This document shows, piece by piece, positions 1,526 through 55,800 of a DNA stretch of 64,000 bases. The position numbers and the translations under genes were made by a program. The stretch spans positions 124,001 through 188,000 of the IMG/VR virus record IMGVR_UViG_3300030098_004828, one strand, 5' to 3'. Below the pieces are notes generated by a model. The model had not been told where the DNA came from, did no database searches, and saw only the letters and a list, made by a program, of their open reading frames with translations. Numbering within the stretch: the stretch's first letter is position 1; every line of letters begins with the position of its first letter.

Positions 1526-1537
1526 ATTAAAAACTAT

Positions 1538-1620
1538 CTATTAACTGCTATTATGCGGTCCGTATTAAAAACCGTTGCAGGACAGTTAATAGTCCTCTTA
1601 CTAGGTATATTATCCTGCAA
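1538..1620 (-). ncRNA. Putative pseudoknotted RNA element
   Basis: Crossing stems 1538-1547/1583-1592 (10 bp) and 1575-1582/1613-1620 (8 bp), plus 1556-1559/1571-1574. Confidence 0.5.
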
Positions 1621-1622
1621 AA

Positions 1623-2333
1623 TTATAATTCAAAATCAGAACCTGATCCTGAATCTGCTTTAAATGGTATTTCTTCAGTAGTAGATGAAGAATCTTTCTT
1701 AACTAAAGCTTTAACATGTACTCCACGGTCAAACTTAAGTAATCTAGAATTTTCTTTATCTAATGCTTCCATAGCAATACCATCTTTAGATATACGTGGT
1801 AAATAAAGATCATTATTTATATAACCTTCTTTATTTTCCCACTCACGACCGCCAATACACATGTTAATAAGTTTAGAACCACCCATTAATCTATTACATT
1901 CAGTCATAAATTCTTCTATAGTTTGTGCTTCAATAGAATCTAATCCATCTCTCATATCTAATGTTTCAGCTAAAGTAATCATATGCTTTAAGATTTCTTG
2001 ATCTCTGCTAATTTCTCTACCACTTGGTAATGTAGTGTCTTTAAATGGAAAAGGACTTATTCTTACTCTACCAACTTGACCATCATATCTTCCTTTAGAT
2101 TGATCATTATAATCTCTAAAGAAACCTTCAAAATCACCTCCAACAGGTGCAGTTTCTACGTGTAAATGTATATTGTATGAATCTGCATCATACGGTGTTT
2201 GATCTAATGTAATAGAATTAATTTTTACTACATGATTTCCTGGTTCTAATACAGGTTTAATTCGTCCACTTCCTGCAGACATGTCTTTAGTATTTAACAT
2301 AACTTTCTTATTTTTTAAATTTACTTCACTCAT
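1623..2333 (-). CDS. Putative single-stranded DNA-binding protein (DUF669-like)
   Basis: LEPGNHVVKI start typical of DUF669-type SSBs, low-complexity tail ending SDFEL, position between AAA ATPase and primase. Confidence 0.6.
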   Translation of the reverse strand: MSEVNLKNKKVMLNTKDMSAGSGRIKPVLEPGNHVVKINSITLDQTPYDADSYNIHLHVETAPVGGDFEGFFRDYNDQSKGRYDGQVGRVRISPFPFKDTTLPSGREISRDQEILKHMITLAETLDMRDGLDSIEAQTIEEFMTECNRLMGGSKLINMCIGGREWENKEGYINNDLYLPRISKDGIAMEALDKENSRLLKFDRGVHVKALVKKDSSSTTEEIPFKADSGSGSDFEL

Positions 2334-2339
2334 TTTTTA

Positions 2340-3023
2340 TTAATTTTCATATTCAATAATTGCATCTTTAACAACTTTTAATGAATTATCTATACGTGCA
2401 TCATCAAACATTCCTGCTGGTGATTTGCAAGTATTTTCTCCATTATTAGCTGTTTCAAATACATAACTTAATTTATCATCTTCTCCTTTGACTACTTTGC
2501 CAAATAAAACTATAGAAAATAGACCTTCTAAAGTTAAAGCATTATCTATCATTTTACCTACAGTTTTTGCTTTTACTTTTCTATGTCCATTCACATCTGT
2601 TGATTCTTCTGAATGTGTTAAAAAGAATATATATAAATCATCTCTCATATCTTTAGGCATCTTAGCAACTTGTGCTAGATTCTTTGCAATTGAGGTAAAT
2701 TTATCATAACCCTTTTCATCAGCTCTATCAAAATATTCAAAACTTGACATATATTGCCAATCATCTATTACTAGATTTTTTATATGAGGCATTTTATCAT
2801 TAACATGCATCATAGCTTTCATAATCCCTGCGGCAGATGACACTCCTGTCATATTTCCTTTTTGATTATCTTTGCCAATCATTGTATAATTCTTTTTCCA
2901 TCCTTTAAATGGTAAAGGTTTATTTGCAATGTTAATAATAAATGTCTCTTTAGGATCTAAATCCCTAATTGATGTAGATTTACCTGACCCTGAGTCAGCT
3001 ATAACTAATACAGATTGTGCCAT
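2340..3023 (-). CDS. AAA_24/Sak4-like ATPase
   Basis: Walker A ADSGSGKST, Walker B LVIDD, FLTH and KSP motifs. Confidence 0.85.
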   Translation of the reverse strand: MAQSVLVIADSGSGKSTSIRDLDPKETFIINIANKPLPFKGWKKNYTMIGKDNQKGNMTGVSSAAGIMKAMMHVNDKMPHIKNLVIDDWQYMSSFEYFDRADEKGYDKFTSIAKNLAQVAKMPKDMRDDLYIFFLTHSEESTDVNGHRKVKAKTVGKMIDNALTLEGLFSIVLFGKVVKGEDDKLSYVFETANNGENTCKSPAGMFDDARIDNSLKVVKDAIIEYEN

Positions 3024-3024
3024 T

Positions 3025-3513
3025 TTATTTATTTAATTTTTGGTTTATACTCAATAATGCTTTTTCAATTCCTTTAAGAACATCTACTATGTCTCTTTTA
3101 TCTGGATTAGTTATTGGTGTTATACAGTCACTAACTTTAGGTTTAAATTGTTCCATTCTATTAGTTACATCATTAATAACTTTTAATTCAGATACAGGTA
3201 CAATATGTCTTTCAAATCCTGAACTACTTGTTACTGTTTCATATTCTTCAGCCCAATGAGGATTATGTTTAAATAAATATAATGTTCTTTTTGGATCTTC
3301 TGAGTTATATTCTATACTAACAAACTCAGTATAAATATCTCTACTTTTTTGTAATTCACTTGGAAAGAAAGATATATGTAACTCATCTTTTCCTGATGGT
3401 CTATATGCCATCTTTGGTATGTATAGTGCATTTATATTACCAGATTTTTGGAAATAATCTTCATGCTCTTCTTTTAATTTTAATACTTTTGCTTTACGCT
3501 CTTGTGGTGTCAT
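3025..3513 (-). CDS. Hypothetical protein (replication module)
   Basis: ORF track 3025..3555; ATG at 3513 (MTPQER) avoids overlap with the helicase. Confidence 0.7.
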   Translation of the reverse strand: MTPQERKAKVLKLKEEHEDYFQKSGNINALYIPKMAYRPSGKDELHISFFPSELQKSRDIYTEFVSIEYNSEDPKRTLYLFKHNPHWAEEYETVTSSSGFERHIVPVSELKVINDVTNRMEQFKPKVSDCITPITNPDKRDIVDVLKGIEKALLSINQKLNK

Positions 3514-3517
3514 ATAA

Positions 3518-4471
3518 TTATCTTCTTTGTTCTTGAGGTGGTGTGTCCATCTCACTTATTTGCATTCTTTCAAATTCTGCTTTGAAAAAACTCATACGTG
3601 TATCACCATTTCTTGCTTTAAGGAAATGTAATACAAGAGTTCTATCATTTTCTATTATATATCTATCAGGACCATAATATCTAATCTTTTGTTTAGCAGG
3701 ACGGTTGATACCTATTAAAGTATCAGCATGCTGTAACATTGCATCTGAACCAAATATATCTGATTCTAATACATAATTACCATACTTACCATTAGTTGCT
3801 CTCTCTGGATTATCTATATTCCTATTTAATTGTGATAAACATATAAACATACAAGGATATTTACGTTTCATCTCTGTAAAAAACTCACCTAATTCAAATA
3901 ACATGTCTAATCTGTTATTTTGATATGGTGCTCTTTTTACAAGAATACTATGATCTAATGTGATAATAGTTTTCTTTTGATGTTGATTCATATAAATATC
4001 AACTTGATCTCTCATCTGGTTAACAGTCATTGGTGTAGTTATTTGATCTACAGGACTTTTAATTCTATCTTTAGCATACACATGACATTTATCAAATGTA
4101 TTTTTATCTAAAATAGTTCCTGCACTACATAATTGTTTATAAGTTTTACCAGTAATAGATGAAAACTCTCTTAATGCTGTAGTTCTTCCTACCATTTCAA
4201 AGCTAAATTCTAATACTCTGAAATCTTCTTCAGGATTTAGAATGAAAGATTCTCTTATTATCTGATCCTTGATCAAGGTTTTCCCTGATCCAGGTCTTCC
4301 CCCGATGACAGTAAGAGTATTCCATTCTAATCCATCAGTTACAGCATCATTAAACTTAGGCCATGGAGTTTGTATAGATTTCTCTGTACCACTTTGCCTA
4401 GCAAGCATATATTTTAATGCATCATTAAATGCTTGATATTGTCCGTCCCATGCTGGTTTAACTTTACTCAT
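3518..4471 (-). CDS. dnaB: DnaB-like replicative helicase (SF4, C-terminal domain only)
   Basis: GGRPGSGKT, FSFEM, LDH, LSQLNR, QHAD, LKARNG motifs. Confidence 0.92.
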   Translation of the reverse strand: MSKVKPAWDGQYQAFNDALKYMLARQSGTEKSIQTPWPKFNDAVTDGLEWNTLTVIGGRPGSGKTLIKDQIIRESFILNPEEDFRVLEFSFEMVGRTTALREFSSITGKTYKQLCSAGTILDKNTFDKCHVYAKDRIKSPVDQITTPMTVNQMRDQVDIYMNQHQKKTIITLDHSILVKRAPYQNNRLDMLFELGEFFTEMKRKYPCMFICLSQLNRNIDNPERATNGKYGNYVLESDIFGSDAMLQHADTLIGINRPAKQKIRYYGPDRYIIENDRTLVLHFLKARNGDTRMSFFKAEFERMQISEMDTPPQEQRR

Positions 4472-11123: not shown

Positions 11124-11533
11124 AATTTTATAATATTAGATCTTTTTACTCTAACTTCTTTAAAGTTAGGCCATCCATCATCTTTAAATCCTATATAAGC
11201 ATTTATTTTGTATTCCGTTGCATAAGGATTGCACTCATCTCTATAATTAGTATCATTCATAATTATACCTTTGATATGCCCTTCTTTATTCATAAGTTTC
11301 TTATCCTTCATTATATCTTCTTCAAATAAATCTTTAAGATCATATTTGTTATCTTTAGGATCAAACCATACTTTATCTTCTTTCTTAAATAGTATATGTT
11401 CTTTTTCATTTACTATCTCATCCATAACTGCTGCTTTTTGATCATCAGAAAGATATGATATCATCATTCTTAGTATAAATTCATCATCTACTGAATCTTT
11501 TATTATCTTATATGTTATTTTATCTATATTCAT
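11105..11533 (-). CDS. Hypothetical protein
   Basis: ORF track, 142 aa. Confidence 0.7.
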   Translation of the reverse strand: MNIDKITYKIIKDSVDDEFILRMMISYLSDDQKAAVMDEIVNEKEHILFKKEDKVWFDPKDNKYDLKDLFEEDIMKDKKLMNKEGHIKGIIMNDTNYRDECNPYATEYKINAYIGFKDDGWPNFKEVRVKRSNIIKLWSGLE

Positions 11534-11726
11534 ATGACACTATTTATTAAAAAGGTTTGGAGTAAATGCTTTGATTGTAGCACCTAAATTAATTAGTACA
11601 TTTACTCCTTACCTACCCACTCAAATAGAATATACAGTCTCCTGTACACTCATCTTTATCCACTATTATTAAATAGTGGTATTGTTAGGGTGACACTTAT
11701 GTCTCTTTTAAACTTTATTACTTAAT

Positions 11727-12374
11727 TTATATTTTATAATTTATTATTTGCCATCCCGTTGCTGACCATTCATCACCTACTCTAGTTTCTCTAAATTCTA
11801 AGTGATTAATGTCAACTCCTTTAAACCATTTTCTGAACTTAGACAATATATGTCTATTTTCAGTTATCATATGTATATTTCTTCTATGACCATACATTAC
11901 CATACCTATAGTTTCAGTTCTATCAACTAGTCTTGCACCAAAATCATCAACTTCAATTGATTTACTTTGATCTAATTTGATATGTATGTTACCATTTAAC
12001 TTATAAAGCTTTTTAATGCTATAAACTTTTTTCATATACCATTTAGGTGCATCAAAATTAACCATTACTGACATATCTGTCACACCTTGATTTACATTAT
12101 AATAATATCCTACAAAACCTCCTAAATATTTATTCATTATACTTAATGTAGAATTATTACCTTCATTAGTTAAGTGAATATTTGCTTCATGTCCTTTAAA
12201 TGACTTTCCACGATCTACTCTTAATAAATTTTCAGATACATATTCTGTATTTGTATTACTAGCTTTAGGCATTGGTTTTCTTATTGATTCAGCCAAATCT
12301 GACAGTATTTCTACTGCCAAACTTGGATTTGAATATTTAAAATTATCTTTTTTATTTCCTGTACTTATAAACAT
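11727..12374 (-). CDS. Hypothetical protein
   Basis: ORF track, 215 aa. Confidence 0.7.
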   Translation of the reverse strand: MFISTGNKKDNFKYSNPSLAVEILSDLAESIRKPMPKASNTNTEYVSENLLRVDRGKSFKGHEANIHLTNEGNNSTLSIMNKYLGGFVGYYYNVNQGVTDMSVMVNFDAPKWYMKKVYSIKKLYKLNGNIHIKLDQSKSIEVDDFGARLVDRTETIGMVMYGHRRNIHMITENRHILSKFRKWFKGVDINHLEFRETRVGDEWSATGWQIINYKI

Positions 12375-12396
12375 ATTTATTCTATTTTAGTGGTTA

Positions 12397-12594
12397 TTAT
12401 TTTAATTTTTCAGCTACTACATTAAGTGTAAATAAACCTAAAGTTAATAGGCCTACTCCCATTATAAATATTAATACAGATGTCCATGCGTGTATTAATG
12501 AATAAATTAATGCATATATTCCAACACCAATAGATGTTATCATTGCACTTAATACTAGTAAAAACTTGATCATGTTAAAAATTTTATCTTTCAT
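12397..12594 (-). CDS. Small two-TM membrane protein
   Basis: Two long hydrophobic segments. Confidence 0.65.
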   Translation of the reverse strand: MKDKIFNMIKFLLVLSAMITSIGVGIYALIYSLIHAWTSVLIFIMGVGLLTLGLFTLNVVAEKLK

Positions 12595-12606
12595 GGGTTA
12601 ATTATT

Positions 12607-12714
12607 TTATATGGTTAAACTTGCTATTATTATTGCTATATGTATTAATAACATTATAATGTATAATACACATAGTATTGGGTTTTCTTTATACCATCTT
12701 TCAAATTGTTTCAT
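12607..12714 (-). CDS. 35-aa membrane microprotein
   Basis: MKQFERWYKENPILCVLYIIMLLIHIAIIIASLTI; the longer start in the ORF track runs through a regulatory element. Confidence 0.5.
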   Translation of the reverse strand: MKQFERWYKENPILCVLYIIMLLIHIAIIIASLTI

Positions 12715-12761
12715 AGGTAATAATACTATACGGTTAGACTTTTTGATTTTAAAAAAAACTG

Positions 12762-12813
12762 ACAAGGTGACGAAGGAACCGCAGGAAGTCAACAACAGGT
12801 GAACGAAGTGAAC
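12762..12813 (-). promoter_or_regulatory. ACAAGGT + GNA-loop DNA hairpin element (variant copy)
   Basis: Plus strand GGT-GA-C-GAA-G-GA-ACC (12766-12780) and GT-GA-AC-GAA-GT-GA-AC (12799-12813). Confidence 0.55.
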
Positions 12814-12833
12814 ACCATAGCAGAAGAAGAGAA

Positions 12834-12956
12834 TTACTCCTCTTCCATATCTTCTAAGATACATTGTTGACAAATATGTACTTCATCACAAGTACATGTC
12901 AATTCAGGATTTATTTTATAGAGTTCATACATAAACTCTGCTTCTTCAAACATCAT
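12834..12956 (-). CDS. 40-aa acidic Cys-rich (Zn-binding) microprotein
   Basis: MMFEEAEFMYELYKINPELTCTCDEVHICQQCILEDMEEE. Confidence 0.6.
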   Translation of the reverse strand: MMFEEAEFMYELYKINPELTCTCDEVHICQQCILEDMEEE

Positions 12957-13073
12957 ATGATATAATTTTAAATTATTGATATACTGCCGGAACCATTTGC
13001 AGATGTGTATAGCAACGCGCCACTCACTATACTAAATCCGGCTTTGTTTTAAACAGTTTACTCTGTTATGATA

Positions 13074-13475
13074 AATAGTACAATGAGTGATGAGCAAACT
13101 ACTCTCATAATGATGACTCTTGGGATTCCCCCTTAGATATTCATTAACCCTATGCAGGTGATTAACCTTTATACTTATACTCAATTAACAATGATTAGTT
13201 GCCAATATCATACATCATATAGCTCTGTTAAGAACTTCATAAGTTGTCAGGGCTTTGAGATATCCCTATAACATTAATGATTTTCAAAGTAAGTTGTTAA
13301 TAAAATTACTTTGTTCATCATACTTCTGCTTATACACTACATACGACAATACAATCATTTGATTATACTATCAGGCATCACACCAAACAGAATGCACTAA
13401 CCCCTTTGAAAAAAAGATTTATTGTGCGACACTCAGGATACTGTGGTAGCTAACCGTTGTATCCTTTGTACTATT
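13074..13475 (-). ncRNA. Putative ~400-nt structured ncRNA
   Basis: No ORF; 10-bp closing stem 13074-13083/13466-13475; nested stems; 12-bp hairpin 13345-13372 with three G-U pairs only on the minus strand. Confidence 0.6.
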
Positions 13476-13625
13476 AATTTTATGTATTGGAATTATATGA
13501 CCAGAGAGATAATATTACACACTTACTATGAAAATATATCAATGTAAGTATACTGACCATTATAATTCCAAATGAGGTTGCGGATACTATTATCCTATAG
13601 AACAAATAACAAATACTACATAGTA

Positions 13626-13790
13626 CTAATACCTATTCTTATGTTTATTCTTTCTTGTATACTTTTTCTTATTACGAACTACTGTATGTGTAGTACAAGA
13701 ACTCTCTATCATCTCTTTAGCCTGTCTTCTACCTGCATTTCTCTTGATTTTATCAATATCTGATTGTTTGAGTGTTATACTTAGTTTCAT
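13626..13790 (-). CDS. 54-aa basic peptide with ArfA-like C-terminus
   Basis: MKLSITLKQSDIDKIKRNAGRRQAKEMIESSCTTHTVVRNKKKYTRKNKHKNRY. Confidence 0.6.
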   Translation of the reverse strand: MKLSITLKQSDIDKIKRNAGRRQAKEMIESSCTTHTVVRNKKKYTRKNKHKNRY

Positions 13791-13999
13791 AGCTATATTA
13801 TTAATAATGTGAAGTGAAAATATTTAAGTGGTAAAAAGTGGTAATAATAGACTATTTGAGGTATCATTCAGAAACTTTAACACACAAACAAGAATAAAAC
13901 ACTATAAAATGTGAACACATATCAAATCAATGGAGTGTTGAGGGATTTTGAGTGGATTATTCTTATTTGAGTGGATATTTCATTGGATTAAACCCTGAA

Positions 14000-14452
14000 T
14001 TAACAAGGTTTAGTCCAATATAAGTTAGGAACAGGTATTTCATTACCATTTTCATCTAACTTGTTGTTTCCGTTTTCATCTCTTTCTACAACAGGATTGT
14101 CCAAATCTATCATAAAACCTTTTAGGAATTGGTCAGATTGAAACTTGTAGTTTATGTCTGATGGATTAATTGCAACTTTTTTACCTGATGCGTCTTCAGT
14201 GTAAAATGTATGTAATCCATAAACTACTTTACCATTACCACGGTTGAACAACTTAAGTTCTTTACCATCTGCTGTCTTATAAGTGATACCTCCGTCAAAC
14301 ATATCATCAGATGCGAAAGATACATTTCTAACTGTGATTGATTTTGACTTTGGATTATCAGGATAAGAGTGAAAGTATGAACCTGTTGTTGGTACTGTTA
14401 TGTCTTGAGTGTTTGTTTTAGTAGTGTTCTCTACTGTAGAATTGTTTTCCAT
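14000..14452 (-). CDS. Hypothetical (putative early) protein
   Basis: ORF track; preceded by the conserved hairpin element. Confidence 0.75.
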   Translation of the reverse strand: MENNSTVENTTKTNTQDITVPTTGSYFHSYPDNPKSKSITVRNVSFASDDMFDGGITYKTADGKELKLFNRGNGKVVYGLHTFYTEDASGKKVAINPSDINYKFQSDQFLKGFMIDLDNPVVERDENGNNKLDENGNEIPVPNLYWTKPC

Positions 14453-14483
14453 AATATTTAATTTAGTTTAATTTATATCATTA

Positions 14484-14551
14484 TTGAACAAGGTGGATAG
14501 GAAGAGAAGAGCGAACGCAGTGAGCTGGAACGGAGCGAAGCGGAGTGACAG
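14484..14551 (-). promoter_or_regulatory. ACAAGGT + purine spacer + GNA-loop DNA hairpins (candidate early promoter)
   Basis: ACAAGGT 14488-14494; AGC-GA-AC-GCA-GT-GA-GCT (14510-14526); CTG-GA-AC-GGA-GC-GAA-GC-GGA-GT-GA-CAG (14525-14551). Confidence 0.65.
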
Positions 14552-14645
14552 ATGTAGTACAAATACCACAGTGATAATAGTAATGATAGTGAGAAGTGGG
14601 TGGGTAATAATGTAGGGTGGGATAATTAAAAGGAAGAAAGCCCAA

Positions 14646-14903
14646 TTATGAGCTTCCGTCCTTATCTTTAACTTTTGCTTTAATCTCTTTACCTAACATA
14701 AGGTCTTTAACAAGCAATTCTTTATTAATCTCCATTTTAGCTTTGGCAATTAATAACTGTTGTCTTTTAGATTTGATAGTTTTTGTAATATCTTCTATTT
14801 TCCATTCAGCCTTCTCAAGCTTTGCAAGTTTTAATTTTGCTTGTAATAATTTAATATTTTGTTCAATAGCAGTAATGTTAGTATAGTCATAATAATAATC
14901 CAT
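14646..14903 (-). CDS. Basic coiled-coil hypothetical protein
   Basis: ORF track, 85 aa. Confidence 0.65.
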   Translation of the reverse strand: MDYYYDYTNITAIEQNIKLLQAKLKLAKLEKAEWKIEDITKTIKSKRQQLLIAKAKMEINKELLVKDLMLGKEIKAKVKDKDGSS

Positions 14904-14948
14904 AATAATAATAATTTAAGTTTATAAATAAAGAAAAAAAACCAGCTA

Positions 14949-15116
14949 CTATTTCTTCACTGGTTTTTCCCGTCTTGCCAAATAACAAAACACGTGTCCT
15001 TTAGTGTGAGGACAAGGAGTTATTGACTGGACTTTGAATACATACTTATGTCTCCATTGATTTAATGTCTTTTGAACATTAATAGATGATAAGTGTAAGA
15101 TTTGATTTTCCCACAT
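14949..15116 (-). CDS. 55-aa hypothetical protein
   Basis: MWENQILHLSSINVQKTLNQWRHKYVFKVQSITPCPHTKGHVFCYLARREKPVKK; below the track cut-off; preceded by the conserved element. Confidence 0.65.
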   Translation of the reverse strand: MWENQILHLSSINVQKTLNQWRHKYVFKVQSITPCPHTKGHVFCYLARREKPVKK

Positions 15117-15145
15117 AGTTTAAAATTTTAAAGTTAATATCAGTG

Positions 15146-15187
15146 TTGTACAAGGTTGTTAAGAATAGAAATATGAGCGTAGCGAAT
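15146..15187 (-). promoter_or_regulatory. ACAAGGT + purine spacer + GNA-loop DNA hairpin (candidate early promoter)
   Basis: ACAAGGT 15150-15156; AT-GA-GC-GTA-GC-GA-AT (15173-15187). Confidence 0.65.
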
Positions 15188-15570
15188 TAATAATAATACG
15201 GAAAACACCCTCCACAAGTTCCTTTGTAACCTAAGTTACTTTATCAGATGTTTTTACTGGCTAAACCGTATTATCATAATTAGAAAGTTACACAAACAGT
15301 GACCCTTTACCCAGACCAATTAGGAATGGTAAACTCAAGATTTAATCATCACATTGAGGTGTGTTTGTTTAATCATTACTGTACACATAATGAAGATAAC
15401 TTTCCAAATAACTATAATGTCATATCAAATAACTTGACAAAGACAAAGAATAAAATAGTACAAATTAACATAATATAAAATTTTAATTACTTATGTCTAA
15501 TGTCCCACAGTGTACATGACCATACATACAATCAAGTTGATGGTGAGAGGTACACTATTTGAGTGGGTTA

Positions 15571-15723
15571 TTAGAATTCAATTGAGTAAGTTGAATGTAG
15601 TTTATCAATCTTGTCTTTGATTAATTGGATGTCTGATGTATTCTCAGGACAATAGTCCATTAACCAATTGAGTTCAAGTTCAAGATTGTTTAATTCAATT
15701 ACAATGTTTTTAATATTTGACAT
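15571..15723 (-). CDS. 50-aa hypothetical protein
   Basis: ATG at 15723 (MSNIKNIV...); first gene of the minus-strand arm. Confidence 0.6.
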   Translation of the reverse strand: MSNIKNIVIELNNLELELNWLMDYCPENTSDIQLIKDKIDKLHSTYSIEF

Positions 15724-15745
15724 AAGTATAAGTTTTAGTTCATGA

Positions 15746-15809
15746 GTGTACAAGGTTGTAGGATGAGAAGGAACCCGTCAGGGTTCTGACCCGTAGCGTA
15801 GCGGAGGGT
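15746..15809 (-). promoter_or_regulatory. ACAAGGT + purine spacer + GNA/GNNA-loop DNA hairpins (candidate early promoter)
   Basis: ACAAGGT 15750-15756; GAACCC-GTCA-GGGTTC (15771-15786); ACCC-GTA-GC-GTA-GC-GGA-GGGT (15789-15809). Confidence 0.65.
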
Positions 15810-15895
15810 GCTGGGTGAGGTGTTGGCTTGTTTCTTTTTGAGCGTGAGATTTTTTTTGAGTGATCTGTGAGACCAGAAGCGTGTGTTGTTTTAAA

Positions 15896-15930
15896 GGGGG
15901 GGCAGGGGCTGTTGGCCAACGGGCCGGGGG
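15896..15930 (+). other. G-tract cluster (potential G-quadruplex) at the strand switch
   Basis: G7-CA-G4-CTGTTGGCCAAC-G3-CC-G5. Confidence 0.55.
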
Positions 15931-16096
15931 AGTTTTATGTAGAACCTTCTCACAACTTAAAACATACAAAACTTTTATATAGGGTAAAATTTCACTATAT
16001 TATATATAAGAGGCCCTGGACCATTTTCCTATAAAAAGGTTTGTGAAAGGATCCCTCCCGAGTGTAAATTAATTATTAATGTAAAAATTAAATGTT

Positions 16097-19259: not shown

Positions 19260-19866
19260 AGAAAAAATTCAAGAAACCATCAAACGTAAAACAGATTATC
19301 TGTGGTTTAGCAAAGGTGATTACAATCTTAATATTGTGGGTGTAAGAAACTCAGATACTAAGAATGAAGTTACAAACCGTTTTGATGATAAAATAACTCT
19401 TTCTTATAAAGTTAATGGTGAATGGCAATTCCATTGTTTTGATTGTACAACAGATCCAGGAACACACTGGGTTGAAAATATCATGAGAAAAGATGGAGTT
19501 GCAATCCTTAAACCTGGTCAATATAGAGGAAGTCATATTATTAGAAAACATCAAGGTAGATATGAAGCTTTAGGACAAGATAGACCTGTAAAAGTATATA
19601 GAGATGATAATAGAGATCATATGTATAATCTTTATGAATCTGCAGTACAAGAGGGAAATTTTGGAATAAATATTCATAGAGCTACTAAATATGCTGGTAA
19701 AAAATCTACACAAGTAGATAAATGGTCAGCAGGTTGTCAAGTAATTGCAGCTAATGATGATTGGAAATTATTTATGAAAATCTGTAGAAAAGCCAGAGAT
19801 GAATGGGGTAATAGATTTACTTATACTTTATTGGAAAGTAAAGATATATTACATTCATGGCTATAG
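19246..19866 (+). CDS. Putative peptidoglycan-active enzyme (L,D-transpeptidase/YkuD-like), endolysin candidate
   Basis: GINIH...WSAGCQV His/Cys motif (HxnSxGC), LNIVGVR, TTDPG. Confidence 0.65.
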   Translation: MQLSREKIQETIKRKTDYLWFSKGDYNLNIVGVRNSDTKNEVTNRFDDKITLSYKVNGEWQFHCFDCTTDPGTHWVENIMRKDGVAILKPGQYRGSHIIRKHQGRYEALGQDRPVKVYRDDNRDHMYNLYESAVQEGNFGINIHRATKYAGKKSTQVDKWSAGCQVIAANDDWKLFMKICRKARDEWGNRFTYTLLESKDILHSWL

Positions 19867-20228
19867 TTAATAAAGTAGACAAGAAAGTTAAAATGAGTAA
19901 GGATCAGGTAATTAAATATCAGATCCTTACCCATTGCTTTTTAAATGATATACAAATCAGTGCATCAGATCTTTTATGTTTAACAGAATTATCAAAATTA
20001 AATGATAAAGAGTTAACAGAATTTTGTAAATTAATATCTGAAAAAAAGATATTTAAAAGTGCACAATCTTGTAGAAACGCCCTTACAAAAGCAGAAAAAA
20101 AAGGTCTAATAATTAAAAATGGATCTAATAAAAAAACTATATCTTTAAATCCTGATATGAATATTCAGATAGAAGGTACAATTTTATTAGACTATAAAAT
20201 TTTAGGAATTGAAACCAAAAAGTCATAA
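19857..20228 (+). CDS. Winged-helix DNA-binding protein
   Basis: SAQSCRNALTKAEKKGLIIK...ISLNP. Confidence 0.6.
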   Translation: MAIVNKVDKKVKMSKDQVIKYQILTHCFLNDIQISASDLLCLTELSKLNDKELTEFCKLISEKKIFKSAQSCRNALTKAEKKGLIIKNGSNKKTISLNPDMNIQIEGTILLDYKILGIETKKS

Positions 20229-20568
20229 AGCTTTTTTTGAAGAAGTGGCAAAAGAAATAGGAGTACATAAAGATGTAGTAGATGATTTAGTAACTTTTTA
20301 TTATGGTAAAGTTAGAAAGAGTTTATCAGAATTAGAAGATACACATATTAGTATTGCAAATTTAGGAACTTTTATTTTAAGAAAAAGCAAATTGGAAAAA
20401 GCAATTAAAAGACAAAAAGATATTTTAGGAAATCTTGAAAAAATGACATATAAAGGTTATGATAAATATGTTCCTGTAAAAGAAAAAATAAAATCCTTAG
20501 AAAAAGCATTAGAACTTGTTAAGGATAAATTAAAAAAGAAAAAAGATTTTAAAAATGAAAATAAATAA
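20209..20568 (+). CDS. HU/IHF-like DNA-binding protein
   Basis: EEVAKEIGVHKDVVDDLV...ISIANLGTF. Confidence 0.65.
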   Translation: MKPKSHKAFFEEVAKEIGVHKDVVDDLVTFYYGKVRKSLSELEDTHISIANLGTFILRKSKLEKAIKRQKDILGNLEKMTYKGYDKYVPVKEKIKSLEKALELVKDKLKKKKDFKNENK

Positions 20569-20890
20569 AATTATAGGTGCTCTTGGTAATATGGGTCAAA
20601 TAATGGAAGGTATTAAAAATAAAGTTTTTAAAGATGAAGATGTAGAAGAAATTGCAAGAGAAAGATGGGTAATATGTGCAGAATGTGAATATTTAGATGA
20701 AATTGGAAATAAATGTGCAGTAAAAGCTACTAAACCCTGTTGTGGTAAATGTGGTTGTAGTTTAGGATTAAAACTTAGAGCATTATCTTCAGGTTGTCCT
20801 GTAGGTAAATGGAAACATGTTACAGATATAAAAACAGAACGTGCACTTAAAGAACAAATAAAACAAAAAGAAGATGCCAATAATATTTAA
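20555..20890 (+). CDS. Cys-rich zinc-binding protein
   Basis: CAEC...C...CCGKCGC...CPVGKW. Confidence 0.75.
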   Translation: MKINKIIGALGNMGQIMEGIKNKVFKDEDVEEIARERWVICAECEYLDEIGNKCAVKATKPCCGKCGCSLGLKLRALSSGCPVGKWKHVTDIKTERALKEQIKQKEDANNI

Positions 20891-21707
20891 ATCAGACGGT
20901 CATGTATATGAAACACTTAATGAAGATCTTGAAAAAGACCAGATTAAGTGGACAAGTGTTACATCATTTGTAGGTATGTTTAAACCTAAATTTGATGCAG
21001 AAGCACAAGCTAAAAAATCTTCTAAAAATAAAAGATCTAAATGGTATAAAATACCTCCAAAAGAAATATTAGCTATTTGGAACAAAGAATCTGAAAGAGC
21101 TATTACATTAGGTAATTGGTATCATGATGAAAGAGAAAAGAGATTAGTGGAATTTAAAACTATTGAAAGAGATGGTGTTGAAGTTCCAATAATAAAACCA
21201 ATAATAGATCAAAATGGTATAAAAATTGCACCTGAACAAAAATTATCTGCAGGTGTATATCCAGAACATTTTGTTTATTTAAAATCATTAGGTATTTGTG
21301 GACAAGCAGATCTTGTAACAATAGTTAATAATAAAATAAATATACTTGATTATAAAACAAATAAAGAAATTAAAGAAAAAGGATTTACTAATTGGGAAGG
21401 TATTACATCTAAAATGTATAAACCTGTTAGTAATTTAGATGATTGCAATCTTAAACATTATAATTTACAATTAAGTTTATATGCATATATAATTAAAAAA
21501 CATAATCCTAAACTTAAAATAGGAGAATTAACTATTCAACATGTTATATTTGAAAAAGAAGGAGATGATAAACATGGATATCCTATAACAAAATATAATG
21601 ATCAAAATGAACCAATTATAAAAGATATTAAAATATATAATCTTCCATATCTAAAGCAAGAAGTACAAAGTTTAGTGATGTGGTTAAAAGACAATCCACT
21701 ATGTTAA
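20874..21707 (+). CDS. PD-(D/E)XK exonuclease
   Basis: SVTS, GNWYH, E...GQADL...ILDYKT, YNLQLSLY. Confidence 0.85.
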   Translation: MPIIFKSDGHVYETLNEDLEKDQIKWTSVTSFVGMFKPKFDAEAQAKKSSKNKRSKWYKIPPKEILAIWNKESERAITLGNWYHDEREKRLVEFKTIERDGVEVPIIKPIIDQNGIKIAPEQKLSAGVYPEHFVYLKSLGICGQADLVTIVNNKINILDYKTNKEIKEKGFTNWEGITSKMYKPVSNLDDCNLKHYNLQLSLYAYIIKKHNPKLKIGELTIQHVIFEKEGDDKHGYPITKYNDQNEPIIKDIKIYNLPYLKQEVQSLVMWLKDNPLC

Positions 21708-46875: not shown

Positions 46876-49800
46876 ATGGCACGAAAGAAACAACAACAGA
46901 GACCGGATGTCCCTAGACCTGAATTACAAAATACATCTAATGTAGATACAGATGTATTTGTAAAAGGTATGACTAAGGATATGGATGTTGCCTTGACCAA
47001 TAAAGAAAATTGGACTCATGCTGTTAATGCTATTAATAATTCTCATCAAGGTGATGCAGGAACTATAGGAAATGAACCTGCTAATTTAGGATGTGCAGCA
47101 ATACCCTATACCATTATAGGTATGATTCATCTATATGGTGATAAATGGGCTATATTTTCAACAGATGATGTTAATAGTCAAATAGGAATATTTGATGATA
47201 GTCATTGTAAATATGATATTGTTGTTAATGATCCTTGTTTAAATTTTAACAAACGTTATTTAATTACAGGAGCTTCTAAGGAAAGTTTTGAGTGTCAGTG
47301 GTGGGTATACTGGGATGATGGTATAAATCCTTCTAGAGCTCTTAATACAGCGGATGTACCATATATTCAAACTAGTTATACAGAAGATGATGGATGTGTT
47401 ATATATGAAGATCAAATACCTTTAAGACTTGATTGTGAAAAAATAAGATTAAATCCTATCCTTGATGTTCCATGTATTAAGTTGTCAAAAGCAAAAGATG
47501 GTGGTCAATTACAAAATGGATCTTATGAAGCTTATATTGCATATGTAGTAGATGATAATAAAGTAACGGATTATTATAAATCTAATATACAAACTCTTTG
47601 GGATCATCAAGATAATGCAGGATCACTAGATATAGATATTGAAAACTTAGATAAACAATTTGAAAGTTATCAATTAGTTATCTATACAAATGCAGGTATG
47701 AATTCATATGCTGTAGTAGTAGGAACATATAGTACAGAACAATCTCATATTAATATTGATATGATAGATATGTCTGCTTCTACACCAGGTCTTGTAGATC
47801 AATTACCATTATATACTCCTATTTTTGAAAAGTCTGAAAAGATGTATGCGGTTAATGACTATCTTCTAAGACAAGGTCCCACTACAAATTTTGATTTTAA
47901 TTATCAATGTCAAGCTAATAATATAACAGCTAAATGGGTTTCTGTAGAGTATCCGGCAGATTATTATGTAAAAGGTGGTAACAAACCAACTTTTATGAGA
48001 GATGAACAATATTCTTTCTTTATAAGATTTGTTTATAATACAGGTAATAAATCTTCTTCTTATCATATACCAGGACGTGCTGCTGTTGGTATACCTGCAA
48101 ATGATATGGGTGTTCCTCCTGATATGAATCAAACATTATCTGGTGAAGCCGGGTTTCCAAATTGGAAAATAAATAATACTGCATTTCAAACAATGTCTAT
48201 AGATGCAGGTGGTGGTGAAAATATAGGAACATATACAGATGATGGAGGATTAATTGTTGCAAAAGGATGGATGGGATATTGGGAATCAACAGAAAGATAT
48301 CCTAATGATCCAGTTAGATGGTGTGATCTATGTAACACTCCTATAAGACATCATAAATTTCCTGAAGAAGGAACAAGTATTTGGACACAAAGAAACAATC
48401 CAAATAATCAATTTATATATGTATTAGGTGTAGACTTTGATAATATAGAATGGCCAAGATATATAGATAAGGATGGTTTTGATGTACCAATACCAAATAT
48501 AGTTGGTTATGAAATACTAGTGGGATCTAGACAAGGTAATAAATCTATTATAGCAAAAGGTCTTGCTAGAAACATGAGAAGGTATGATATTCAAAATGCT
48601 CAAGGTGAACGTGGTATTGCTGATGCTGAAGGTGGTGATGATAACTTAGAAGGATTAATGCCTAACTATCCATTTAATGATTTAGATAGAGATCCATATT
48701 TATCACAACAAGAAGTTATAAGACAAAGTGATTATGTACCTTATGGTCCTAATTATACAATGCATAATATATTTACATTCCATTCTCCAGATACTTCGTT
48801 TGATAGACCTTTCTTAAGTCCATCTGAAATTAAAAGTTATGGTGTAACAGGAGGATATTCTTTAGGTAGATTTAAAAGATCAGAGGATCATCCTAAACAT
48901 AAATTAATAAGAGATATTGCAGCTATTATTGCAGCTATTATTGGTGCAGGTTATGCTATTATGGAAATGCGTGGTGAAAAGGTTCAAAAAGTAAAAGGAT
49001 CTAAAGCATTATCTATTGGTCAAGATCCAGGACCATATAATCAATCAGATGCACTTAAAGATGAATCAACTATTGATACTACTGCTGGTACAGGTACAGG
49101 TGGTGTAAGTATTGCAGGTGTTTATGCTTCAGGGGGTACAGGTACAGGTGGTACTGCTAATGTTGATATGGATGTTAGTAATGATTCAGGACTTGAAGGT
49201 ACAAACCCTGCTGCTACCGATGATGATGGAATTACTAATCAAGACCTACAAAATATAAGCCCTACTCTTCCTCCTGATCCTAGTGGTGTTGATACTGATA
49301 CAGGTATAGAAACAGTAAATGGTGGTGGTGCAGCTCCAGGTATGGCTGGTAATATAAGTATAACTGATCCAGGTCCTGTTGGTTTTATACCTCCAAGTAT
49401 TGTTACTCAAACATTAACAGCAGATGGTGCTACTGCTGATTATCAGTTAACTTATGGTCCTAGTACATCTCAAGCACAATTAAATGCATATGAAAATATG
49501 CAAGCTTTTAATACCGCACAAGAAAATGATGCACCAGGAACTCCAGCAGGTCAAGAAGGTCAACAAGGATCAGGTGGTACAAGTTCAGGTAATCTTAACA
49601 TTATATCAGGTATTAATATTAATGATATTGCTAATGGATTTCAACCAACACAAGAAAGTGAATTTTCAATGTCTACTACACCTATAGGTGATGCAACTAA
49701 TCTTATTCTTACTGGTGGTCTTCCTAATAGTGTTTCAGGTGCAGAAGAAGATTTCTTACATGATATAAAAAGTAAGGGTGATAATGCTGCAATGCAAACA

Positions 49801-52800
49801 ACTGGTTATACAGGATCTAGTAGAGATGTTGAAATGAAAGGGAGTAAGTATAAATCATTACCAGGATTTTTACAAATAATGTTTAAGACATATTCATTCT
49901 TAAACTTCATGGTTGAAGGTGGTGAAGGAATTATAGAGATGATTTATGAATTTATGAATCCTCAAGACTATGCATATAAATATAATTCTTATGGTATGTA
50001 TAGTGGTAATTTTATTCCACAAATGGGTGATAGACATAGAATAGAATGTAAAAGAGCTAGATACTTATCAAGTGCATTTCAAAATCTTGGACCAGAATAT
50101 AAAATAAATAATTTACATAGACCTAAAACAGTTGTTTTACAAGGAGTTGAAAATCTTGTATCTCCTTCTTCTCCACAATACTGGAGAGATAATTCAAAAT
50201 ATGTATTAGGAGAACTTCCTTCATGGGTATTGCAAAATCCTACACAACCTGTAACAACTAAAATATCCGCTCACTATGTAGGATTAAAATATAGAATAGA
50301 TAATCAATATGGTCAAATACAAAGTATAAGACAACTACCTGTAAAATGTGCAGGGATTTTTAGAAACGCAGCTTTTCCTAGTTCTGCTGATGTTAATAAT
50401 GCAGAACCAAATGAAACTATATGTACTACTTGTGATGAAGAGACAGGACTTATATTTGATGAAAATACTAGATTTAGATCAGAAGTCATATTTGGTGGTG
50501 ATTGTTTCATTAATAGATATAGTGAAAAAGTTATAATGCCATTCTTTTGGGATTTCTTAAAAGGAGAACCAGATGGATATACTTTTGATTATAGATTGCA
50601 TCAAAATGTTCCTTTTGTTAGATTCTGGTATAATTCACAAAAATATGAATTATCTGGATTTGTTAGACCTATTACAGATTTAAGTTTTTCTTGGTTATCT
50701 GATCCTAGTGATCCAGGATTACCTTCAGCTCTTCATAACTTAGATAGAATAGGTAGTGGTAACTATAATGCTATAGATGAAGGATGGTTATCTGGTACTC
50801 CTAATAATGAAGATGATTGGTGGATGACTGCAAACTCAGAAAGTCAATCAGGTATGTTTGGTGATGGATTTGGTGGTCTAGGTGGTGGAACAGGTTGGGG
50901 TTCAGGTACTGATGCTAATACTACTGGTACAACTTATACAGATGGTGGTCCACCTGATACATCAGGAGATAGTGTATCACAATCAACTTCTAACTGGGCA
51001 AGTTCAGGAGGACAAGCAACAAAATCTAATGGAATCTTTACATTAAAGAATGCTTATTGCTATTTACATTCTAGTGGTATAAATGAATTCTTTGTAGAGT
51101 CAGAATTAAACATGGCTCAAAGAGATTGGGATGATAAACCTGCAGGTAGACATTATGATTGGCAAGAGTTTACAGATGTTAATGCATTATTTCATGCAGA
51201 TATTATTAAAGATGGAAACTTTTATAAGTTTGATAGATCTTTAATGTGGAGAAATTTAGGAAGTCAATTATTATCATACGGTTTTGTACAACCATTAAGT
51301 TATGATCCAGTAGTTGCTGAAGAGTGTATGACACATTATCCAAAAAGAATAATGTATTCATTAAGAGCTCAGGATGAAGCTAAAAAAGATTTTTGGAGAG
51401 TTTTCCTTCCATTTAATAAAGAAGACTTTAAAGAGCCTGTAACTACTATTAAACCTATAAATAAAACAGGTGCTGTAATATTATTTCCACATAGATCTCC
51501 TCAAATATGGCAAGGTGTAGATACATTACAAACAGAAGGTAACACTAAAGTTACAATAGGAGATGGAGGTTTATTTGCTGGACCAAGACAAAATATTACA
51601 AATTCAGATCTTCCAAATGAATATGGTTCTTGTGAAAATATGCTTAGTGCAATTAATACACCAGCTGGTTTATTTTATATATCACAACAACAAGGTAAAA
51701 TATTTAACTATACGGGCGGTTTAGAAAATATTGCTGATAGAGGAATGAAACAATGGTTTAATAATTTTCTTCCTTCTAGACTATTAATGGAGTTTCCTGA
51801 AATGGAAGGTTCTATAGATGCAGACAATCCAATTATGGGTATTGGAACTCAATCAGTTTATGATGCTAAACTTGATTTAGTTTACTTTATGAAAAAAGAT
51901 TATGCATTATGTGATCATTCAGGATGTATACAATGGACAGAAGATGATGGATTTGTTTATAATAATACATTATGTAATGATGCAGATCAAATAGCTTCAT
52001 GTCCTGATGGTTATACATTGTATGAAGCTGGAGATGTGCATCCTGGAACAGGAGAAGTTTTAACAGAAGATACTTGTTGTAATATAGTTAGAGATGATTA
52101 TCAAGAGTTTGAAGAAGCTACTATGGATTGTAATACAACAGTTTATGTAGTCCCTGAAATTTTTAATTTTGAAAGACTCCCTAATGATGAAGTTTTAACT
52201 AAGCATGAAAAAAATACAGTTCTTTTTAATGTATCTGATGATGTATTTGAAAACATCAGAGAAAAGAAACCTATGAAAGTTAAACTAAATATTCCTTTCA
52301 TAGATGGTAGAAGAATAAATTTAACTTTAAAGAACTTTGAACCTCATAGAAAAAATACTAGAGTTTTAACAAAAAGTAAAGATGGAACTGTAGAAAGAAA
52401 TTATGTACCTAATATACGTGCATATAGAATAAGAAATAAAGAAATACTTAAAAATGGTAAAGAAGTAAAAGCTACTGGATCCATTATTTTCTCTAGAAAA
52501 GCATTTACAGGTTTCATAACAATAGGTAATCAACAATATGAAATTAGAAGGCGTGGTCAAAATAAATACGCATTAATACATTCTTATGATGTTAAGGAAA
52601 GTCCTTTATTTGCTTGTGATACTAACACATCACACAGCATTCCTGATTCAGTTAAATTAGAAGATTTACCAAGAACAGCAAGACAACTTGCTAAAAGTGG
52701 TAATAGTTCACCTGATCATTGTATTAATTTAGCTGTTACAGTTGATTATTATACATATGATTTTCTTGGTCAAAATTATCAAGACACAAGTGATTGGGCA

Positions 52801-55800
52801 ATGATGTTAGTTGCAGCAGTGAATGAAATATATATGAATGATCTTAATATTTCAATTACAAGTGATTTTATTTATATTTATACAGATGAAAGTGTAGATC
52901 CATTTGCAGATTGTTGTGGAAGCAACCAAAATGATATGCTTCCGGTACTTAGAGATCAATGGGATGGTGATGAACCAGATTTTGATGGTGTTATTAGAAG
53001 TATAGCTACTTTATTTACTGCTAGGGGTTGTGGTGGAGTAGCATATACAGGTGGATTATGTTATAGAAATAATTGGGGTTACAGTGTTAATGGTTTTTGT
53101 GGAAATAACATGCCTTCAGGCACACTTCCAATACAAGGACAAACTACAGAAGGTTATGATATAGAAGATGGTTTTGTGAATCTTACTAATTCATTAACTG
53201 TAAAAATAACAGCTCATGAAATAGGTCATAATGTTGGTACATTACATACACATGATTGTGTATGGGAGCCAGATCCAGTTTATGGTTTTGGTGGATTTAC
53301 AGGTGATACAGGTCAAATTGATATTGGTGGTAACCTAGTTTATTCTATGTTTATAGATAATTGTGAAGACGATTGTGATGAAACAGCAACTGCTGATTGT
53401 GGATCAGAACCTATTGATTCAAGTTGTTGGCCATCTCCTTGGCCTATGCCTTATCAAGAAAATTTAACTAATACAGCATTTGAGTATACTACTTTAATGG
53501 GTTATAATGAAAATTTAGCTTTTCAGGGTTGTATAACTTATGATCAACTTAATGGGATTTTAGGATTTCATCCAATAGTTATGGAACAAGCTATAAACCC
53601 ATGGGTAGATGATGTACAAGCTAATAGTGGTACTTCATGGAATCTTTTTGGAAATCAAGAAGGTGAAACAAATTGTTTATCTTGTGCTGATGTAAATGGT
53701 GAAAATGGTGGAGGTGATGATGATCCTATTTATGAATGTGATGACTTACAAGAATTTTTAGATGCTACAATTAATTCTGAATTAGGATGGCTTGTTGAAC
53801 AAGGTGGATCAGGAGGTTATACACCAACTCAATATTGTAATTATTGTGATAATCCAGTTGCAGATAATATTAATGCAATAGAAGGTTCATTAGATCTATG
53901 TAATTGTTGTACAGGAGGAGAACTTATAGTGGAAGGTTGTACAAATCCAAATGCAACAAACTATAATCCTAATGCTAATGTAGATGATGGATCTTGTGAA
54001 ATTGTAGGTTGTACAGATCAGTTTGCAACTAACTATAATCCAAATGCAAATATGACATGTATGGGTGAAACCGGTTTTATAGAAAATGGTTGTTGTCTTT
54101 ATGATTATAGTTGTAATAATTATTATTTATGGGTTGATGCTACAATTAATTCACAATTAGGTTATGATTGGACTCCAAGTGATTATTGTACTTTTTGCTT
54201 AAATCAAGAATTTTATGCAGATGATCCTATAATGACTCTTGAAAATGCAACAGAATTCTGTAGTTGTTGTAATGGAGAAGATGTAGAGATTTTTGGATGT
54301 ATGGATTCAGAAGCAAATAACTTTAATCCATTTGCAACTACTCCATGTAATGGAACACAAGGAGAATATGGACCTACAATTTCAATTATAAACGGTACAT
54401 TTAGTGGAGGAATTACTATACCAGAAGGAATAGAAAATGTAAATGGAGATTCTGTTCCTGCTGGATATTATTCTCCTACATTTTATTTACCACCAGATGG
54501 ATGGCATGCATGTAAAAATGCTAATTTTAATCCTATTATGGGACAATTAGGTGAAGACTGGCCTAATATTACTACATATGCAAATTCTGGAGGAGGCACT
54601 GGTGGTGGTGGTGTAAACGTTGAAACTGGAGAATGTTGGAATTTTGTTTTACCAGCTTCAGATTTCTTTGGTGATGATAGCTTACCTGATTCTGGACCAC
54701 ATGGTAATATTACACCAGATAATTATACTGATTGGTTCTTTGATAATCTAGGGGATCCTGGAATATGTGGTGGATATTCCAGTATAATAGCAAATGATAT
54801 AATTAATTCAGGTATAAGTACTCACGCATATGGAGATGGTTTTATGGGTATGGCTTGGTCTCCAAGTTTTCGGGAAGATATGCCTTATTATGTTTTTGAA
54901 ACTGGTCAGGAATATGATGCAACTTGGGCGTATGAATGGCATAGAGAAGGAGTGGGACAAGAATTAAGTAGTCCAATGATAGCAAATGTTGAATATACAA
55001 TGAGTGTTGTTGTAGCTAATTCATCTGGTGGTTATATATTAGATGGTTATGAGTGGGAAGCTGCTGGTGTAAGAATATGGGGTGGTAATTGTGCTTGTCC
55101 TAATGATGATAATGGAGGTGAATTATTATGGGAGTCAGAACCTCAATCTGGAAGTTCCGATGTACCTATGGAATGGGTTACACGTACTGGAACATTTACA
55201 CCAACTCAAAATTTTACACATATAACTATAGAACCAGGTAATGGTGGTGAAACATGGAATGGACCATCTACACCTGGTAATGAATGGAATGGACAAACAA
55301 CTAATGGAGAGTCAGGTATATATGGTGCCGGTAATGACGTTTATATATTTTTAGATTATGTTAGTGATATAACTCCAACAGCTATATTAGGTGAAGATAA
55401 TGATTGTTGTGAATATGGATCTGAGGAAGAAGAAGAAGGAGGAGGAGAAGAAACATTAAGTTGTGAACAAATTCAAGAAGATCCTCAAGGTTATATTGAT
55501 ACATTAATTAATGATCCTATAGGTTTAAATTGGCCTCCAATTGAATTTTGTATGTTCTGTAATGGAAGTATACAAAATGAAGAGGTTGCTAGTATTGGTG
55601 AAGTTTGGAGTGCATGTAGTTGTCTTTGTACTGAAGAACCTAGACCTTTACCTGATTGTGATGACATGTGGACTTTTATTAATGATAATATTAATTCACT
55701 GGGAGTTAATTATAATTGGACAGTAGATAATTATTGTACATTTTGTTTAAATCCTTCATTATTTGGAGTTGTTCAAGATGTTGAAGGTGTTTTAGATTAT

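Follow-up and report, generated by a model that had tools for sequence, protein, structure and literature searches.

A new structured RNA in marine crAss-like phages

Is a stretch of about 400 nt without open reading frames, located among small genes of a marine phage and closed by a 10-bp inverted repeat, the gene of a large structured RNA, and if so, is it related to any known RNA? We examined this question for positions 13074-13475 of a 64,000-nt stretch (hereafter the window; all coordinates refer to it unless stated otherwise), which corresponds to positions 124001-188000 of the 245,646-nt IMG/VR record IMGVR_UViG_3300030098_004828. The initial annotation, made from the sequence alone, proposed a large minus-strand phage non-coding RNA in the early region, of the same general category as GOLLD and ROOL RNAs but assigned to neither, and possibly of a new class. 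All the stems it named were indeed present: AATAGTACAA (13074-13083) with TTGTACTATT (13466-13475), TGAGTG (13084-13089) with CACTCA (13430-13435), GGATAC with GTATCC, CAAAGTAA with TTACTTTG, and a 12-bp hairpin at 13345-13372. A repeat search extended the closing repeat to 13071-13083 with 13466-13478 (13 nt, 92% complementary). No ORF of 60 aa or more lies in 12957-13625. When folded as a single RNA, the minus strand reached -105 kcal/mol (z -3.7) and the plus strand -85 kcal/mol (z -3.1), which is more than expected by chance.

The genome belongs to a marine crAss-like phage. Terminase, portal and major head protein are encoded on the plus strand, while a helicase and a DnaD-like initiator fragment are encoded on the minus strand. 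The terminase is 24-26% identical to those of crAss-like phages of Bacteroides, Flavobacterium and Cellulophaga, and the hosts are probably Flavobacteriia. More than 600 IMG/VR contigs carry closer relatives of this terminase, the complete ones being 110-123 kb long. Interestingly, the record contains two terminase genes (19270-21456 and 146508-148694 of the record) which lie 127 kb apart and are 84% identical. The record is therefore two related genomes of about 120 kb joined end to end, which is hidden by its CheckV completeness of 100%. We will call the genome containing the window W and its sister genome S.

Next, we searched for homologues. The first one found (88% identical) matched only window positions 13066-13481, and its flanks did not align. 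Pattern scans revealed five IMG/VR contigs and twelve metagenome contigs, giving 13 distinct full copies, 79-92% identical to the window and 394-402 nt long, plus two partial ones. Homology starts and stops at the edges of the block. The upstream sequences are unrelated between most copies right up to the first base of the element, except for a few copies sharing a flank (for example contigs L087 with L096, and L094 with L089). Downstream, most copies share only a 21-nt motif, TAACAGAGTAAACTGTTTAAA (13048-13068, minus strand), which contains a 5-bp inverted repeat. The distribution is patchy, as only 2 of 50 related records carried the element by blastn. A blastn search of the region against GenBank phages found nothing, and neither did a scan of 185,579 bacterial and archaeal genomes for an invariant 21-mer.

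The terminal inverted repeats and the abrupt loss of homology at both ends could suggest a mobile or selfish element, such as a miniature inverted-repeat element, an ORF-less intron or a transposon-guide RNA. However, the element is present once in the 245-kb record, it always occupies the same syntenic place in the same orientation, and no target-site duplications were observed. The flanks are not exons of a conserved gene, no Rfam intron or HEARO hit was obtained, and no transposase, TnpB/IscB or reverse transcriptase lies nearby. Two neighbouring proteins (215 aa and 150 aa) led to no related loci and received no function from PHROGs and Pfam. The single copy, the fixed position and the lack of exon-like flanks, together with the covariation with strand-specific G-U pairs in the interior described below, largely refute the mobile element and intron readings.

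The conservation of the fold was then evaluated. On 11 sequences, RNAalifold predicted 111 pairs, 19 of them with compensatory changes, and 98.2% of pair cells were standard pairs. With 13 sequences, 98.6% of 1391 cells were standard pairs and 20 pairs (73 cells) changed on both sides. None of 500 shuffles reached these values, and sliding of the 3' partners by one to three columns gave 35-47% pairing and 0-4 covarying pairs. The reverse complement of the 11-sequence alignment folded much worse (-56.1 against -92.9 kcal/mol, 74 against 111 pairs), and G-U cells outnumbered A-C cells 194 to 9. From this, the folded strand is the minus strand, the same as that of the neighbouring genes. The block is non-coding: variable columns fall 49/48/47 on the three codon positions, indels are mostly 1-2 nt, no frame is conserved, and the longest stop-free frames are short, antisense and in different frames. 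As the family is narrow, a part of the conservation reflects recent common descent.

The consensus is a multi-branched fold of about 15 helices, all on the minus strand. Hairpin P2 (13435-13465, AGGAUAC/GUAUCCU) has one pair that switches from A-U to U-A in two sequences, and its apical loop carries the palindrome UAGCUA (13447-13452), identical in 11 of 13 sequences and replaced by UAGCUG, which still self-pairs, in the other two. The long hairpin P5 (13324-13392) consists of a 9-bp base helix, a conserved internal loop and the 12-bp distal helix (13345-13372). Seven of nine pairs of the base helix show compensatory changes, with a partial copy adding a third sequence version, while the distal helix has three covarying pairs and several G-U pairs. 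Hairpin P7 (13285-13313, CAAAGUAA/UUACUUUG) is replaced by CAAGAUAA/UUAUCUUG in five sequences, yet its 8-bp stem is kept in all 11 sequences folded. The same two stem versions are visible in contigs L136 and L137, and the loop varies from 5 to 13 nt. In the central domain (13142-13279), P8 closes a multi-way junction with hairpins P9, P10, P11 and P12. Covariation was seen in P11 (four pairs) and P12 (one pair), whose loops both read UAAUCA, and P8 keeps pairing through G-U changes. P4 also has at least one compensatory pair. The short hairpin P13 (13122-13131), mostly with a GGAA (GNRA-type) loop, changes from GGG/CCC to GGC/GCC in two sequences. In contrast, the helices involving the 3' tail (13074-13125) never vary. 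These are P1 (13074-13083 with 13466-13475), P3 (13084-13089 with 13430-13435), the 7-bp AUGAUGA/UCAUCAU helix P6 (13110-13116 with 13315-13321) and hairpin P14 (13087-13108); the single exception is the innermost A-U pair of P1, which becomes A-C in L136 and L137. These helices are thus supported by conservation and thermodynamics only. A search for conserved pseudoknots of 5 bp or more among unpaired segments found none. Box C/D-like (UGAUG loop), hammerhead-like (AUGAUGA) and K-turn readings, considered by eye, lacked the partner motifs.

We also examined if the element is present in RNA samples. Words of the element occurred in 20 or more marine metatranscriptome runs from many studies; one run (X7) contained 78% of the element's words but only 45% of the words of an 801-nt stretch around it. 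Contigs of four RNA runs from three studies were then aligned to 11500-15500. In X7 and a second run, X19, summed depth was 13-21 over 13108-13509, but 0 in 13510-13911 and in 12036-12839, while other pieces of the same phage in X7, including neighbouring genes, matched with 0 differences at depth 2-6.5. A 340-nt contig identical to the window spans 13129-13468, and contigs of other variants start at 13126 and end at 13473, so that 13126-13473 is the covered part. No contig in any of the four runs covers 13033-13125. For the window's own variant, all 31-mers from 13077 to 13129 are variant-specific, so a graph branch does not explain this stop and coverage really drops there. This might indicate that i) the abundant species ends near 13120-13129, in or just after P13, in which case the mature RNA may lack the closing stem, or ii) the strongly paired 3' end is lost in library construction. 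As assembled contigs carry neither strand nor true ends, the strand assignment rests on the fold. No joints skipping the element were seen. One X19 contig continues 50 nt upstream of 13476 with unrelated sequence, which fits co-transcription with upstream DNA in that variant. Scans for sigma-70-type promoters and terminators were uninformative (20 found against 16 expected).

A replication element, such as a structured single-strand origin or a pre-primer transcript like ColE1 RNA II, might be considered, since the block lies about 1.5-2 kb upstream of the DnaD-like initiator fragment and the helicase, and the RNA contigs end at a G-run (13128-13132). However, the G-run is not conserved as such but co-varies as the P13 stem, there are no iterons or repeats, and many relatives replicate without the element, which in genome S is replaced by a GOLLD RNA (see below). 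We regard this possibility as very unlikely.

Clustering of ORFs around 13 copies showed a conserved position. In RNA sense, the divergent structural-side genes are followed by a few small variable ORFs, the element, more small ORFs, and then conserved replication-side genes (ORF clusters c3, c1, c4 (DnaD-like), c5, c9 and c10). The designation of this part as an early region is inferred from gene order and from the precedent of phage phi14:2 (see below). The 21-nt motif directly 3' of the RNA occurs once per genome, at the same syntenic point in many relatives with or without the RNA. It follows the 400-nt RNA in most copies, whereas in relatives lacking both this RNA and GOLLD it follows small hairpins or tRNA-like pieces, among them a T-arm remnant. 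It could be a terminator, a processing site or a recombination landmark. A degenerate copy (GACAAACTGTTCAA) lies upstream of the RNA in L087, L096 and L094.

This arrangement would allow for a cis-acting element of the early or replication-side operon, for example a processive antiterminator, an RNA-processing or stability module, or a long leader. The element lies inside a co-directional gene block, one RNA contig continues upstream of it, a conserved hairpin motif follows it directly, and the invariant 3' tail missing from RNA contigs could be a processing or termination signal. Against this, the genes on both sides differ between copies, so no specific gene is served, the element is far larger and more branched than known antiterminator RNAs, RNA contigs peak on it above its flanks, and many close relatives lack it altogether or carry GOLLD in its place with the same downstream genes. 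A cis-acting role thus appears unlikely. Comparably unlikely, although not separable from our main interpretation by sequence alone, is a decoy or sponge RNA that would bind and neutralise a host protein or defence factor, or recruit a host enzyme, early in infection, without assembling into GOLLD/ROOL-like particles. Location among small hypervariable genes typical of host-takeover regions, patchy distribution reminiscent of accessory counter-defence genes, and the UAAUCA loop displayed by two hairpins, as repeated protein-binding sites would be, are in agreement with it, but no partner is known and no resemblance to any host RNA family was found in Rfam.

Interestingly, the sister genome S carries a GOLLD-like RNA in the same slot. 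The motif lies there at 12345-12359 of the record, and the 931 nt upstream of and including it are ORF-poor and fold with z -6.5. The 3' half matches Rfam GOLLD (RF02032) over the full model (65 bits, E 7e-16). The RNA is about 765 nt long (1526-2290, minus strand, of locus L130, or about 12370-13134 of the record, outside the window). Two more distant relatives, G036 and G035, contain GOLLD-like RNAs scoring 132 and 106 bits. All of these are below the gathering score of 150, which suggests a divergent marine crAss-like GOLLD subgroup. Protein synteny between W and S is collinear on both sides of the slot. Moreover, an 81-nt element which matches only the two ends of the tmRNA model (E 1e-11) and is not called by ARAGORN folds as a 7-bp acceptor stem with a G-U third pair, a long hairpin and a T-arm. 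It lies 53-138 nt upstream of the 400-nt RNA in L087 (13103-13183, plus strand), L094 (4222-4302, minus strand) and L136, and directly upstream of the GOLLD-like RNA in S (L130, 2291-2369, minus strand), but is absent from the window's own genome. The slot is therefore bounded by shared landmarks, and it holds either GOLLD or this RNA. No GOLLD hit was found in five element-bearing records, although these are fragments and a first search also missed the 65-bit copy.

As for known RNAs, none of the 4227 Rfam 15 families, including GOLLD, ROOL, tmRNA, RNase P and introns, matched: the whole window gave no hit at gathering thresholds, and relaxed searches of the region and of the element alone gave only chance-level hits with E of 0.7 or more. 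GOLLD gave no hit at E up to 10 even when only 431 nt were searched, while the same search finds the GOLLD-like RNAs of S and of the two relatives. A profile HMM and covariance models of two domains (P4-P5 and the central domain) detected no remote homologue; the covariance models find all family members, but nothing significant in 45 related records, the GOLLD loci, phi14:2 or the syntenic regions of four complete relatives. The RNA is therefore not a detectable relative of GOLLD. A 2023 catalogue of 10,006 viral structured RNAs reported IMG/VR motifs of 29-151 nt, and overlap of the new RNA with such a sub-motif cannot be excluded. GOLLD and ROOL are large phage and prophage RNAs of unknown function, often found near tRNA islands, which form RNA-only nanocages held by kissing loops and A-minor contacts (PMC12286853). 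Compared with GOLLD (about 765-900 nt), the RNA described here is likewise large, multi-branched, phage-encoded and, in some genomes, located next to a tRNA-like gene, but it has half the size or less and a different helix layout. ROOL, which can also be abundant, is larger as well (659 nt for the env-120 RNA of solved structure; PMC12286853). tmRNA and RNase P RNA are similar in length and have 5' and 3' ends paired in a closing helix; however, we observed no T-arm, CCA-type end, tag ORF or conserved RNase P core sequences, and ARAGORN found no tRNA or tmRNA in the window.

Taken together, the interpretation of the initial annotation is supported in each of its parts, and the comparison with GOLLD and ROOL proved closer than could be known from the sequence alone. 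The block is a discrete, conserved, non-coding unit that encodes a new family of large structured RNA carried by a subset of marine crAss-like phages, and it is present in ocean RNA libraries well above its flanks. It can be inferred that the RNA is probably made as part of the leftward, replication-side transcription unit and then probably persists as a compact, nuclease-resistant species of about 350-400 nt. The most likely role, in the absence of direct evidence for any function, is that of a trans-acting 'ornate' phage RNA doing the same job as GOLLD/ROOL-type RNAs, and we would assign a probability of roughly 0.6 to this reading as a whole. The RNA would act as a folded particle, perhaps self-associating through the palindromic loop of P2 and the GNRA loop of P13, or bound to a host or phage protein; it is less likely to regulate an adjacent gene. 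Still, one palindromic loop among about 12 could be chance, and a slot shared with GOLLD shows interchangeability of position, not of function. The biochemical function is not known, as is also true of GOLLD and ROOL, which are among the largest bacterial and phage RNAs without one. A compact, unrelated RNA replacing GOLLD at the same position in sister phages represents a natural swap experiment, in which whatever the two RNAs share, such as partners, assembly or timing, points to the function, and a 400-nt molecule is much easier to study than an 800-nt one. We can only speculate that it represents a third, much smaller class of self-assembling ornate RNA, functionally interchangeable with GOLLD as a cassette in the early region of abundant ocean crAss-like phages and cut out of a precursor whose invariant 3' tail and closing helices serve only for processing; this remains doubtful.

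Marine crAss-like phages thus keep a dedicated RNA-gene slot, which in different genomes holds a tRNA-like element, tRNA-Arg, GOLLD or this RNA. A tRNA-Arg(TCT) gene lies in the same early region of relatives G015 (locus L127, 4232-4306, minus strand) and G009 (locus L106, 1725-1799, minus strand), in G015 about 280 nt downstream of the landmark motif. In the cultured marine crAss-like Cellulophaga phage phi14:2 (NC_021806.1), two long intergenic regions early in the genome (g004-g006), a few kb into the early or replication-side block, are transcribed above most genes and stay abundant, with function unknown (bioRxiv 10.1101/2020.03.07.982082). They show no sequence or model similarity to the new RNA. 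One of them, the g005-g006 region, contains a tmRNA gene not annotated in NC_021806.1 (4031-4500, plus strand; tag GSSVQKLAMVA), found by both ARAGORN and Rfam (46 bits, E 3e-16), whereas the other shows no excess folding (z about 0). In a complete 123-kb relative (G025, 112125-115556), the syntenic early region contains two stretches of 1.3 and 2.0 kb (626-1912 and 2099-4057 of locus L108) without an ORF of 60 aa or more and without an Rfam hit, which could be further non-coding RNAs or a sign of a recoded stop codon. Within the window, about 1 kb of ORF-poor sequence (15117-16096) at the point where the minus-strand and plus-strand gene blocks diverge is presumably the divergent promoter region. 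Finally, a single ORF of 4217 aa (46876-59529, plus strand) recalls, by its size and position, the giant virion-packaged RNA-polymerase-containing proteins of crAss-like phages.
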